Below, one piece after another: positions 1 through 7,919 of a DNA stretch of 64,000 nt. Each line of letters starts with the position of its first letter. Position 1 is the first letter of the stretch. The translations under genes and the position numbers were made by a program. The notes below the pieces were generated by a model, which saw only the letters and a program-made list of their open reading frames with translations, ran no database searches and was not told where the DNA came from. Location: sequence record ON529851.1. The stretch is one strand, 5' to 3'.

Positions 1-20
1 ATCCGCCACACAGGAAAAGG

Positions 21-95
21 TGGCCCACCCAGGAGCGCTCGCATCTCCGTCTCGGGGATTTCACTCCCGTGCTAATCTGTCTCAGCTATGAGTGG
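21..95 (-). tRNA. tRNA-Phe(GAA)-like, atypical
   Basis: Acceptor CCACTCA/TGGGTGG-G-CCA, D arm GCT/AGC, anticodon loop with GAA but 8 nt long or bulged, irregular T loop (ATGCGAGCG). Confidence 0.6.
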
Positions 96-96
96 A

Positions 97-180
97 TGGT
101 GGGAAGGGAGAGAATTCGCACTCTCACAGCTTGCGCGGGGGATTTACAGTCCCTTGGGCTCACTCGTGCCCAGCCTGCCC
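97..180 (-). tRNA. tRNA-Tyr(GTA)
   Basis: Cloverleaf, AGGGA-CTGTAAA-TCCCC anticodon arm, long variable arm, encoded CCA. Confidence 0.92.
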
Positions 181-246
181 AAAATGTTACGGCTCAGTCG
201 CCGCCGGTCATGGTGATCTCCTGGATCAGATGAAGGTGTTGGAACG

Positions 247-281
247 GAAAAGGCCCGCCTGGTGGAAACCAGGCGGGCCTT
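247..281 (-). terminator. Intrinsic terminator (attenuator) upstream of the Tyr/Phe tRNA array
   Basis: 13-bp stem AAGGCCCGCCTGG/CCAGGCGGGCCTT followed by a T run on the minus strand. Confidence 0.8.
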
Positions 282-312
282 CGAAACTTGGGTGTTCTAA
301 GTGGGTATCAGA

Positions 313-408
313 TTAAATCTGCGTCCCACCATCGCCCATGCACGAATGGCCCGCCCGGTTAAACCGGACGACCTGAATCTGCTGCACGTTGTTGCGATAG
401 GTGAACAT
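313..408 (-). CDS. Candidate leader peptide MFTYRNNVQQIQVVRFNRAGHSCMGDGGTQI (31 aa)
   Basis: ATG lies at the predicted TSS of the 416-444 promoter; composition biased to F/Y/R/N/V/Q/I; contains an antiterminator arm. Confidence 0.72.
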   Translation of the reverse strand: MFTYRNNVQQIQVVRFNRAGHSCMGDGGTQI

Positions 409-415
409 GAGGAGA

Positions 416-444
416 CATTTACTACAGGTGGCGGGCAGTGTCAA
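416..444 (-). promoter_or_regulatory. Housekeeping-sigma promoter TTGACA-N17-TAAATG
   Basis: Perfect -35 and 17-nt spacer; TSS about 409, giving a leaderless mRNA. Confidence 0.7.
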
Positions 445-446
445 CA

Positions 447-659
447 TTATTGTCGACGATGGACCCAAGTTTTTTCGATCTCGCGATCCCAGACGCCCCA
501 ATTGCCGTCCGTCGGATAGTCGCGGTAGCGCCAGCCGCCGCAGTAACGGCACATGGCTTCGGTCTGGTCAGCCTCAGCGGGATGCGGCTCGCAGTCCCCC
601 GAGACGTCGCACAAAGGCCACCCGTCCGGCCCCAGGGTGGGGTCGTCCGGGTCCGTCAC
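447..659 (-). CDS. Hypothetical protein, Cys-containing (70 aa, GTG start)
   Basis: GTGA overlap with the stop of 656-952; CxxC motif. Confidence 0.6.
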   Translation of the reverse strand: MTDPDDPTLGPDGWPLCDVSGDCEPHPAEADQTEAMCRYCGGWRYRDYPTDGNWGVWDREIEKTWVHRRQ

Positions 660-4791: not shown

Positions 4792-4876
4792 TGGCGGTGC
4801 GCCAGGGAATCGAACCCTCAACCTTGCGGTCGGCGACGGTTTTCAAGGCCGCTTGTCCCCATGGACGCTGCACACC
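4792..4876 (-). tRNA. tRNA-Ser(TGA)
   Basis: Loop CT-TGA-AA, long variable arm, G73-CCA; irregular D arm. Confidence 0.85.
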
Positions 4877-4977: not shown

Positions 4978-5195
4978 TGGTGGAGGCGAGGGGATTCGAA
5001 CCCCCGTAGACGCCGAACCCCCGCATTACCGAGGGCCGATCTCAGGTTTAGAACGCGTGTGCCGTCCTGACCATCTTCCGCAGGCCAGGAGGTCTATCGT
5101 AACGACCCCGTCGATCGGTTGCCTCTGCGTCCCGGATTTACCCGGACCGTTGTTCTGTTCCACGGTGCTCATGCCGAAACCCGAGCGACGCCCCC
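4978..5195 (-). ncRNA. Compact one-piece tmRNA-like RNA (218 nt)
   Basis: GGGGGCG/CGCCTCC-A-CCA acceptor with G3:U70, canonical T arm, no anticodon arm, tmRNA-like 5' end GGGGGCG..GGGTTTCGGC, internal GCA-started frame at 5122-5048. Confidence 0.62.
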
Positions 5196-5992: not shown

Positions 5993-6074
5993 TGGAGAAC
6001 CCTGGTGGAGTCGAACCACTTGCGCCTGGATTAAAAGCCCAATCCCGGCCACCCGGATTTAACGCTCAAGGTCC
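5993..6074 (-). tRNA. tRNA-Lys(TTT), enlarged D region
   Basis: TTGGG-CTTTTAA-TCCAG; acceptor GGACCTT/AGGGTTC with wobble pairs. Confidence 0.72.
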
Positions 6075-6087
6075 CCTAAAATGATGT

Positions 6088-6178
6088 TGGTGAACGTGGT
6101 CGGACTCGCACCGACGATGAAGGTTGTAACCTAACGGGATTAAGAGCCCCGGCCTCTCGCTACTGAGGTGACACGTCC
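6088..6178 (-). tRNA. tRNA-Lys(CTT) with long variable arm
   Basis: CGGGG-CTCTTAA-TCCCG, 19-nt variable region, T loop TGCGAGT. Confidence 0.8.
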
Positions 6179-6216: not shown

Positions 6217-6287
6217 TGGAGCCGGCGGACGGTGTCGAACCGTCCCATGTCCACTACGAAAGGTCAGCCCTGCCACCAGGCGCCGGC
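6217..6287 (-). tRNA. tRNA-Thr(CGT)-like, degenerate
   Basis: GCCGGCG/CGCCGGC acceptor (Thr-type G1,C2,C3), good T arm, loop TT-CGT-AG with two stem mismatches. Confidence 0.55.
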
Positions 6288-7589: not shown

Positions 7590-7600
7590 GGAAAAACCTC

Positions 7601-7675
7601 TGGCGAGTCCAAGGGGAGTTGAACCCCTCTCTCCACCGTGACAGGGTGGTGTCCTAACCGATAGACGATGGACCC
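7601..7675 (-). tRNA. tRNA-Asp(GTC)
   Basis: CCACC-CTGTCAC-GGTGG, G73-CCA. Confidence 0.94.
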
Positions 7676-7706
7676 GTATCAGAGGGTCGATCCGCAGGAA
7701 GATGCT

Positions 7707-7784
7707 TGGAAGGGCGCCGGAGACTCGAACTCCGCTCACTTGGTTGAAAGCCAAGTATCCTGCAAACCGCTAGACGAGCGCCCC
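7707..7784 (-). tRNA. tRNA-Glu(TTC)
   Basis: CTTGG-CTTTCAA-CCAAG, CCA. Confidence 0.9.
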
Positions 7785-7818
7785 ATAAAGCACAGGGCGT
7801 CGAACACGAGAGCCGCGA

Positions 7819-7884
7819 TTAGGCGGCGGTCGTATCTCGGCCCTGGAAGGCCTCTCGTTCGTAGCTGGTCAGACGGTAGATCAT
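7819..7884 (-). CDS. Candidate leader peptide MIYRLTSYEREAFQGRDTTAA (21 aa)
   Basis: ATG at the predicted TSS of the 7891-7919 promoter, directly ahead of the Glu/Asp tRNAs. Confidence 0.5.
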   Translation of the reverse strand: MIYRLTSYEREAFQGRDTTAA

Positions 7885-7890
7885 TTGGTG

Positions 7891-7919
7891 CTTGTAACAG
7901 AACTGTCGGTGGGTGTCAA
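7891..7919 (-). promoter_or_regulatory. Promoter TTGACA-N17-TACAAG
   Basis: Perfect -35 and 17-nt spacer; leaderless. Confidence 0.68.

Follow-up and report, generated by a model that had tools for sequence, protein, structure and literature searches.

Leader-peptide attenuators are known from the amino-acid operons trp, his, leu and pheA, and multivalent versions control thr and ilvGMEDA in enterobacteria. The genes for tRNAs are a textbook case of control at the promoter level, exerted via growth rate and the stringent response. The large tRNA clusters of big phages are thought to sustain late translation, and the arrays have been regarded as cargo whose expression is passive. Here, we analyze bases 1-64000 (hereafter the window, 64 kb) of Brevundimonas phage vB_BpoS-Marchewka (ON529851.1), a 348-kb circular record from the Dolichocephalovirinae (phiCbK-like phages), and describe leader B, a short leader that lies just ahead of a tRNA array (array B). 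Leader B is probably a ribosome-mediated leader-peptide transcription attenuator that gates this array. The sense strand of the whole module (promoter, open reading frame (ORF), RNA switch and tRNA genes) is the minus strand, and, because base 1 is an arbitrary record origin, the DNA to its left is the other end of the same record.

Leader B resembles the Escherichia coli pheST (pheM) and hisS leaders and the small ORF of Caulobacter trpS (PMC4117421, PMC2965389), in which a leader peptide controls a translation gene for the same amino acid. Those elements act on synthetases and serve one amino acid each, whereas leader B precedes tRNA genes themselves. T-box riboswitches are similar in that attenuation reads the state of a specific tRNA through a terminator/antiterminator choice, but they bind uncharged tRNA directly without translation, respond to one tRNA, control synthetase or amino-acid genes and occur mainly in Firmicutes. 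Because neither a T-box (RF00230) nor any other Rfam family matched at the leader in a search over 460 nucleotides (nt), even with E up to 10, leader B is not a T-box. E. coli pheV was considered as a precedent and discarded, its promoter abutting the tRNA with no leader ORF in between. Leader B shares with trp-type attenuators a promoter-proximal, codon-rich ORF, the 1:2, 2:3 and 3:4 pairings and a terminator before the regulated genes, and it shares with the thr and ilv leaders the sensing of several amino acids by one leader. It differs from the attenuators of amino-acid operons in its tRNA targets, in addressing seven amino acids at once, in its apparently leaderless mRNA and in being borne by a phage. 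The predicted element shows every structural hallmark of an attenuator, the exception being the regulated genes, which are tRNAs and not genes for biosynthesis, transport or synthetases.

The features of the module are listed in Table 1. The original prediction, made from the sequence alone, had placed a promoter at 416-444, a leaderless ORF at 408-313 and a terminator at 247-281, and had proposed that 348-358 pairs with the 5' arm of the terminator as an antiterminator, in competition with a weaker hairpin. We recovered each of these parts on the minus strand. The promoter hexamers and their spacer are as described, with a 7-nt gap to the ATG; the ORF has these coordinates, and its ATG at 408 is the conserved start; the terminator has arms at 279-269/262-252 followed by TTTT; and the pairing of CCGGGCGGGCC was recovered as a predicted, conserved 2:3 helix. 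The competing hairpin is likewise conserved, as a 1:2 pairing with compensatory changes.

Table 1. Leader B, its predicted RNA switch and the start of array B (positions are those of the window)
Feature	Position	Strand	Details
Sigma-70-type promoter	444-416	minus	-35 TTGACA (444-439), 17-nt spacer, -10 TAAATG (421-416)
Leader B ORF	408-313	minus	31 codons and TAA (315-313); MFTYRNNVQQIQVVRFNRAGHSCMGDGGTQI, then stop
Proposed sensing codons 2-18	405-355	minus	all seven array amino acids occur within codons 2-14 (405-367)
Region 1, 5' arm of 1:2 hairpin	373-363	minus	predicted anti-antiterminator, possibly a pause hairpin too
Region 2	359-343	minus	CCGGGCGGGCC (358-348) and TTCG (346-343); alternative partners region 1 or region 3
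Stop-codon hairpin	329-301	minus	stop (315-313) in loop; roughly ribosome-footprint size
Region 3	283-269	minus	CGAA (283-280) and GGCCCGCCTGG (279-269); terminator 5' arm and partner of region 2
Region 4 and U-tract	262-243	minus	CCAGGCGGGCC (262-252), TTTTCCGTT (251-243)
Mini-ORF between terminator and first tRNA gene	222-194	minus	strong ribosome-binding site AGGAG (222-218), 6 nt, ATG ACC GGC GGC GAC TGA (211-194)
tRNA-Tyr(GTA)-like gene	180-97	minus	non-canonical, 8-nt T-loop TGCGAATT, CCA end; ARAGORN only at 90% threshold
tRNA-Phe(GAA)-like gene	95-21	minus	non-canonical, T-loop TGCGAGC, CCA end; ARAGORN only at 90% threshold
tRNA-Val(GAC) gene	from 7 across record origin	minus	first 7 bases in window; GenBank, ARAGORN

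The codons of the leader match the array that follows it. Array B comprises nine tRNA genes (Tyr, Phe, Val, Ile, Val, Gln, Asn, Arg and Arg) and, apart from the 5-codon mini-ORF, no coding sequence (CDS); its amino-acid set is exactly Y, F, V, I, Q, N and R. Past the origin, the genes are, in order, Val(GAC), Ile(GAT), Val(TAC), Gln(TTG), Asn(GTT), Arg(CCT)-like and Arg(CCG)-like, with Arg(CCT) above the Rfam tRNA threshold (32 bits) and Arg(CCG) below it. The original prediction had expected tRNAs for Arg, Asn, Val, Gln and Ile, and tentatively Cys and Met, to the left of base 1; all five firm expectations are borne out by GenBank, ARAGORN and Rfam, whereas Cys and Met tRNAs were not found there. 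It had also placed tRNA-Tyr and a Phe-like gene downstream of the terminator, the latter running off the window edge. Both are present, but the Phe-like gene lies wholly inside the window and the gene at the edge is tRNA-Val(GAC).

Of the 17 codons 2-18, 16 do specify F, Y, R, N, V, Q or I, a set whose background frequency is 0.31 (binomial 9e-8), and 15 of the 17 are readable by anticodons of the array (background 0.24, 4e-8). No other of the 91,561 six-frame 17-residue windows of the 64 kb holds at least 16 residues from the array set, and the pattern TTGACA-N17-TA-N11-ATG has a single occurrence in the 64 kb with 0 expected; chance, called unlikely in the original prediction, is excluded. 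Codons that are rare in the phage are kept in leader B, namely TAT, TTT, CGG and ATT, the last of which accounts for 11% of Ile codons and is invariant in all phages examined.

Conservation was assessed in 17 Dolichocephalovirinae phages, of which 16 came from BLAST matches and one from IMG/VR (L142). The leader B ORF is in frame in 17/17 phages with 31-32 codons, though the last six codons vary, and its insertions and deletions are multiples of three only. In the aligned codons 4-17, all 13 amino-acid replacement states remain within the array set (mutational null 2e-7). These include N to Q, N to F, Q to R, V to R and N to Y or I, several of which require two or three base changes. Replacements that stay within the set argue for selection on which tRNA reads the codon, not on peptide chemistry.

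The window contains a second leader, leader A (6784-6650, beginning VTTLSHKLSHLSTAATALSTLAHAPTKLSPKSPTT), which precedes genes for Pro, Pro, Thr, Lys, Lys, three Leu, His, Ala and four Ser tRNAs. Its first 34 residues after the start are all (34/34) drawn from P, T, K, L, H, A and S, the amino acids of its own array, and this stretch, too, is the sole such window in the 64 kb. The sets of leaders A and B are disjoint, and, when the two leaders are tabulated against the two sets over their whole ORFs, Fisher's test gives 4e-10. A duplex search found in leader A a segment complementary to its own terminator arm. The claim that leader A uses the same mechanism as leader B is supported in outline only.

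Leader B has no Shine-Dalgarno sequence, and the gap of 7 nt between the -10 hexamer and the ATG (408-406) suggests that transcription starts at or adjacent to the A of this ATG, which would give a leaderless mRNA. In Caulobacter, leaderless mRNAs are frequent and efficiently translated (PMC4117421). The arrangement TTGACN-N17-hexamer-N7-ATG is found in 16/16 related phages, whose spacer sequences are unrelated, and the 17th phage (L142) has an 18-nt spacer. The window has five copies of TTGACA-N17-TA where 0.2 would be expected; all lie on the minus strand, and three precede tRNA sub-arrays. In GenBank, the locus is annotated as CDS MARCHEWKA_00020, which starts at 447, encodes 44 amino acids (aa) and overlaps the stop of the upstream gene (TAATG). 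We rejected this 44-aa ORF as a conserved unit. In Kikimora and Gurke (79% identity), an in-frame TAA interrupts its extension and identifies the ATG at 408 as the conserved start. Both phages keep the ATG and the two hexamers of the promoter at the same spacing, around a spacer of entirely different sequence. The Marchewka clade is peculiar in that the TAA of the upstream gene overlaps an ATG (TAATG; 445-449, minus strand) in frame with the leader, and ribosomes ending the upstream gene could re-start into the leader on read-through transcripts; the overlap is not kept in other clades.

The RNA downstream of the sensing codons can adopt mutually exclusive folds. The whole leader B fold has a predicted energy of -74.2 kcal/mol, which corresponds to z = -5.6 relative to shuffled sequences. 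For nine diverse phages, the predicted fold of the complete leader consists of the 1:2 hairpin (373-363/359-348), the stop-codon hairpin and the terminator; the region 1 hairpin is part of the RNAfold minimum-energy structure in all nine, with compensatory changes at 3 of its 11 pairs. When the leader is cut before region 4, the same nine sequences form a 2:3 helix of 15 base pairs (bp) (358-343/283-269) around the stop-codon hairpin. Without region 4, the 2:3 conformer is better than the 1:2 conformer by 6-13 kcal/mol, and with region 4 the terminator conformer is favored by 14-26 kcal/mol. As modeled, leader B RNA is therefore a kinetic switch. The terminator stem is GC-rich and 11-15 bp long, with a loop at 268-263; TTTT (251-248) is followed by CC, and the structure spans 283-248 when the flanking A-U pairs are included. 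Swift, Colossus and phiCbK have an annotated rho-independent terminator at the corresponding site, which in phiCbK is NC_019405 51,465-51,502. On the minus strand of the 64 kb, CCRGGCGGGCC occurs only at 358-348 and in the 3' arm of the terminator. The stop-codon hairpin is predicted in all nine folded sequences despite their differing sequence there. Most other leaders examined likewise have the stop codon in or beside a small predicted hairpin, usually in its loop. They include the leader A sequences of Kikimora, phiCbK and Rogue, the third short ORF of the window (7819-7919) and leaders of Erythrobacter phages, and the arrangement looks like a design feature common to these leaders.

Terminator, antiterminator and competing hairpin are kept with compensatory changes across 16-17 phages. 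The 1:2 and 3:4 helices together are 94% paired, with 7 covarying pairs, and 0/500 shuffles were equally good; the 3:4 helix alone reaches 99% pairing and includes 4 covarying pairs. Of the 15 pairs in the 2:3 helix, 3 show compensatory changes, and 92.7% of cells are paired. In Marchewka, regions 2, 3 and 4 read CCGGGCGGGCC, GGCCCGCCTGG and CCAGGCGGGCC, respectively. Bajun has CCGGACGGGCC and GGCCCGTCTGG in regions 2 and 3, with region 4 unchanged (CCAGGCGGGCC). Colossus has CTTGGCGGGCC, GGCCCGCCAGG and CCTGGCGGGCC, and its region 1 has changed to CGCCAG, which preserves the 1:2 pairing, while L142 has TCGGACGGGCC in both regions 2 and 4 and GGCCCGTCCGA in region 3. The changes in Colossus and L142 are coordinated three ways, and this joint variation of regions 2, 3 and 4 indicates that both the 2:3 and the 3:4 pairings are selected.

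These elements suggest how the leader would work. If transcription begins with the A of the ATG or a base adjoining it, a 70S ribosome could start on the leader once the 5' end emerges, and it would then meet sensing codons that draw on F, Y, R, N, V, Q and I, matching the tRNAs directly downstream. If reading is rapid, the ribosome would clear region 2, come to sit at the stop codon and displace the stop-codon hairpin while the polymerase makes regions 3 and 4. Behind such an on-time ribosome, region 2 would re-pair with region 1, the 3:4 terminator would form and the array would stay silent. If any of the seven charged tRNAs is short, the ribosome would lag, leaving region 2 and TTCG free to pair with CGAA-GGCCCGCCTGG in a 15-bp antiterminator. 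This would block the terminator and let the polymerase continue into Tyr, Phe, Val, Ile, Val, Gln, Asn, Arg and Arg. The product of the array would relieve the stall, amounting to negative feedback on tRNA supply in which one shortage suffices to open the switch. The process would be a race, in that a delay anywhere in codons 2 to ~14 would leave region 2 free and let the antiterminator form first, and the free TTCG/CGAA extension of the 2:3 helix by four bases could start strand exchange.

A race is favored because the ORF extends past region 2, because its stop lies in a hairpin of footprint size and because 2:3 is stronger than 1:2. Leader B departs from trp in these respects. A trp ribosome that has reached the stop codon covers region 2, whereas the ORF of leader B continues for ~12 codons beyond region 2 and stops within a hairpin loop ~34 nt short of the terminator. 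Also unlike trp, the 2:3 form exceeds the 1:2 form in stability as long as region 4 has not been transcribed, and absence of translation may therefore give read-through and not super-attenuation. The alternative to the race is a strict trp-type scheme, in which only codons ~9-13 would count and an untranslated leader would terminate. We infer that stalling gives read-through, which codons count, and that the signal is the amount of tRNA rather than its charging.

Other phages offer a comparison in which the sets of amino acids have been re-sorted. BLAST searches with the tRNA array returned mostly lone tRNA matches in unrelated phages, and one weak match of this kind led to phages of Erythrobacter. 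In phage vB_EliS-L02, leader 1 (MFNVIAMNNPAPAIMVPVAMACVEGTRD, then stop) is followed by tRNA genes for Pro, Pro, Met-like, Val, Ile, Ala and Asn, and leader 2 (MTFGRTKRDRREGDERGFTS, then stop) by Lys, Lys, Gly, Gly, Asp, (Ile), Glu, Glu, Arg, Arg, Phe and Arg. Leader 3, which is leaderless (MFTQTALHLLTQTTLCWQCQYSSLSPF, then stop), precedes Ser, Tyr, Leu, Leu, Thr, His, Gln, Gln, Ser, Cys, Trp, Thr and Leu. This third leader was read before its array; Thr, Gln, Leu, Ser, His, Cys, Trp and Tyr were expected, and ARAGORN found all of them under default settings. The three sets (P, M, V, I, A, N; K, G, D, E, R, F; and S, Y, L, T, H, Q, C, W) do not overlap and cover all 20 amino acids. In a 3x3 table of leaders against arrays, 57 of the 72 residues fall on the diagonal (chi-square p = 3e-14), a figure equaled by 0/200,000 permutations. 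Phage XM05 has the same leader-array pattern as vB_EliS-L02. Its leader 1 (MRFVVAFMNNPAPAIMVPAVEARVGDGGTAF, then stop; followed by Pro, Pro, Val, Ile, Asn, Val and Ala) is a relative of leader B, as judged by its tail GDGGT. In this phage, the array has gained Pro and Ala tRNAs beside those for Val, Ile and Asn, and the leader has acquired codons for both of these amino acids. We regard this co-variation of leader and array as the strongest comparative evidence for a functional match. Since Erythrobacter leaders 1 and 2 carry 5' untranslated regions of ~45 nt, a leaderless start is not essential to the system.

Several observations weigh against the assignment of leader B as an attenuator. The U-tract of the predicted terminator is short and broken (UUUUCC). 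The antiterminator consists mostly of invariant pairs, and its covariation is modest (3-19/500 shuffles equally good). Codons 15-18 lie inside the 1:2 hairpin, so that their identity may partly reflect RNA structure, and a ribosome stalled on them should cover region 2 and favor termination; codons 2-8 are too far upstream to mask region 1 under a strict trp-type model. On the side of the tRNAs, ACC and, in Marchewka, CGC are unread by any tRNA of the array, and three of the seven Marchewka tRNA types (Tyr, Phe and one Arg) fall under standard detection thresholds. Finally, the short ORF that precedes the Glu and Asp tRNA genes in the window has 3 Glu/Asp codons and no clear terminator.

The same parts could also serve another signal, amino-acid starvation (uncharged tRNA) or a general slowing of translation, with the array belonging to a stress or late program. 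Although this is unlikely in our view, a stalled ribosome cannot distinguish an absent from an uncharged tRNA, the known leader-peptide attenuators all sense charging, and phage tRNAs tend to be classed as late transcripts (PMC13478754). Extra tRNA, however, is no cure for amino-acid starvation, and a sensor of general slow-down needs neither the spelling of its own array nor a spelling that follows arrays when they are re-sorted. It is less probable again that translation of the leader acts elsewhere, on exposure of the tRNA precursor to processing by RNase E or RNase P or its protection from it, on Rho-dependent termination, or through a leader RNA or peptide that works in trans. The weak U-tract would fit such a role, as would the third Erythrobacter leader and the Glu-Asp leader, neither of which has a convincing terminator, and trans-acting attenuator products exist in an alphaproteobacterium, as described for Sinorhizobium trpL (PMC7298713, PMC7968998). 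Yet regions 2, 3 and 4 change together, which is expected only if 2:3 and 3:4 are both selected, and a GC-rich hairpin followed by Ts has the standard form of a terminator and is annotated as such in relatives. That the locus simply encodes an ordinary small phage protein, with the hairpin terminating the upstream operon and the composition matching by coincidence, is highly improbable: GenBank does list a 44-aa hypothetical protein here and the peptide core YR..V..I.VVR..RAGRS is fairly conserved, but the 44-aa form is not conserved, the upstream gene is separated from the terminator by a promoter, no other stretch of the window is as extreme in composition, the peptide matches no protein family, replacements such as N to F, Q to R and V to R follow membership of the tRNA set and not chemistry, and the same rule holds with other sets in the second Marchewka leader and in five Erythrobacter leaders.

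Array B includes tRNA genes of an unusual kind. No tRNA was found in window positions 1-247 by default ARAGORN or by Rfam (RF00005), and this apparent absence was overruled by relaxed ARAGORN, by canonical orthologues and by covariation. The Tyr-like and Phe-like genes depart from the canonical form in their T-loops, which read TGCGA instead of TTCGA, but they still form covarying cloverleaves with an anticodon and a CCA end. The Phe-like cloverleaf has 6 covarying pairs over six phages. A canonical tRNA-Tyr occupies the equivalent position in Kikimora, Gurke and Bajun, and the odd type is also present in Colossus and CcrPW; a canonical tRNA-Phe takes the place of the Phe-like gene in phiCbK and Rogue. 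The Phe-like gene has a conserved A.C mismatch (or a 9-nt loop) adjoining the anticodon. Both genes lack GenBank annotation, and they covary across Brevundimonas and Caulobacter phages. In Erythrobacter phages, Val tRNAs carry a different odd T-loop (GGCAGGA).

Further sub-threshold tRNA genes are unannotated in Marchewka. Within the window, on the minus strand, these are 6217-6287, 6088-6178, 5993-6067 and 4792-4876, which correspond to Thr(CGT), Lys(CTT), Lys(TTT) and Ser(TGA), respectively; at the end of array B, outside the window, they are Arg(CCT) and Arg(CCG) (L002 7875-7953 and ~7757-7831). The published number of 24 tRNAs is therefore too low, by 8 when the Tyr-like and Phe-like genes are included. 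Beyond the last Arg gene (L002 ~7590-7745, minus strand), a TTGACA-N17-TACAGA promoter is followed after ~60 nt by a strong terminator (AACACCCCGCAC...GTGCGGGGTGTT), and this unit may encode a small RNA. A weak match to the Rfam transfer-messenger RNA (tmRNA) clan, with 31.9 bits (threshold 47), falls between two genes for Ser tRNAs (window 4978-5109, minus strand). The mini-ORF ahead of the Tyr-like gene is kept with synonymous changes in Kikimora and Gurke, reads MNNGG and stop in Colossus, CcrPW and Rogue and MTGN and stop in RB23, and is absent in phiCbK and Bajun.

The ORF ahead of the Glu and Asp tRNA genes belongs to a third promoter unit of the window (7819-7919, minus strand), in which TTGACA-N17-TACAAG is followed after 6 nt by MIYRLTSYEREAFQGRDTTAA and a stop, just before tRNA-Glu and tRNA-Asp. 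It is kept in Kikimora (MTYLTSIREREAFTGRDTRTA, then stop), with its stop in a hairpin loop and a compensatory change, and it resembles Erythrobacter leader 2 (MTFGRTKRDRREGDERGFTS). With Glu/Asp codons at just 3/20 positions and no clear terminator, it was rejected as a Glu/Asp-rich leader and not counted as evidence; it may be a reduced leader. In the Erythrobacter phages, vB_EliS-L02 has a clear permuted tmRNA (92 bits) after its third tRNA array (L148 1820-2247), and none of its tRNAs or leaders described here is annotated in its GenBank record. XM05 has, upstream of its tRNA arrays (L146 3433-3917), a GOLLD-like RNA (RF02032, 120 bits, E = 4e-32, under the curated threshold of 150) with an embedded tRNA-Lys, which is unannotated in the record.

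As assessed by BLAST, the leader B module occurs in 46 phage records, 45 of which are Caulobacter or Brevundimonas phages. A 14-base pattern matched at least 120 stretches in IMG/VR; this pattern is unspecific, and no module was present among the stretches retrieved. Stricter IMG/VR patterns returned isolate genomes only, one of them new (L142), and the one metagenome scan gave a single chance match, in coding DNA. The leader peptides A and B matched no Pfam or PHROG family.

Phage tRNA arrays have been viewed as codon-usage compensation or as replacement of host tRNAs lost during infection, for phiCbK by Gill et al. 2012 (PMC3556154). Leaders and attenuators go unmentioned both in this genome paper and in the paper on the Brevundimonas phages. 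Earlier work treats phage arrays as simply expressed, whereas the array described here would be gated. A full-text literature search, with subscription-only papers outside its scope, yielded no report of leader-peptide control of tRNA genes, and a genome-wide survey of attenuators (PMC2965389) does not list tRNA genes. What is new here, on our best reading, is that ribosome-mediated attenuation appears to have been redeployed as feedback on tRNA supply, with seven amino acids per leader. We lean, if only slightly, towards a broader proposal, that these phages carry a code-wide gauge. Two or three leaders would together spell 18-20 amino acids, each gating its own sub-array, so that the phage would sense decoding per codon class and replace what it lacks, with the leaderless start as time zero of the race and codons 2 to ~14 as its stopwatch. 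If there is such a gauge, shortages could arise, among other causes, from host shut-off, from what late expression demands or from host defenses that cleave tRNAs.

If leader B works as proposed, the ribosome would test the very tRNAs that are controlled, which would be a direct feedback loop on decoding capacity and would explain the grouping of phage tRNA genes. It would also make it possible to predict from a leader's codons which tRNAs come after it, a blind test that succeeded twice here, and would open a route to ask whether phages sense host defenses that target tRNA. The compact, modular design could serve as a codon-specific sensor in synthetic biology. For the phages themselves, many 'hypothetical proteins' beside tRNA arrays would be regulatory leaders, and several of their odd tRNA genes escape standard tools.

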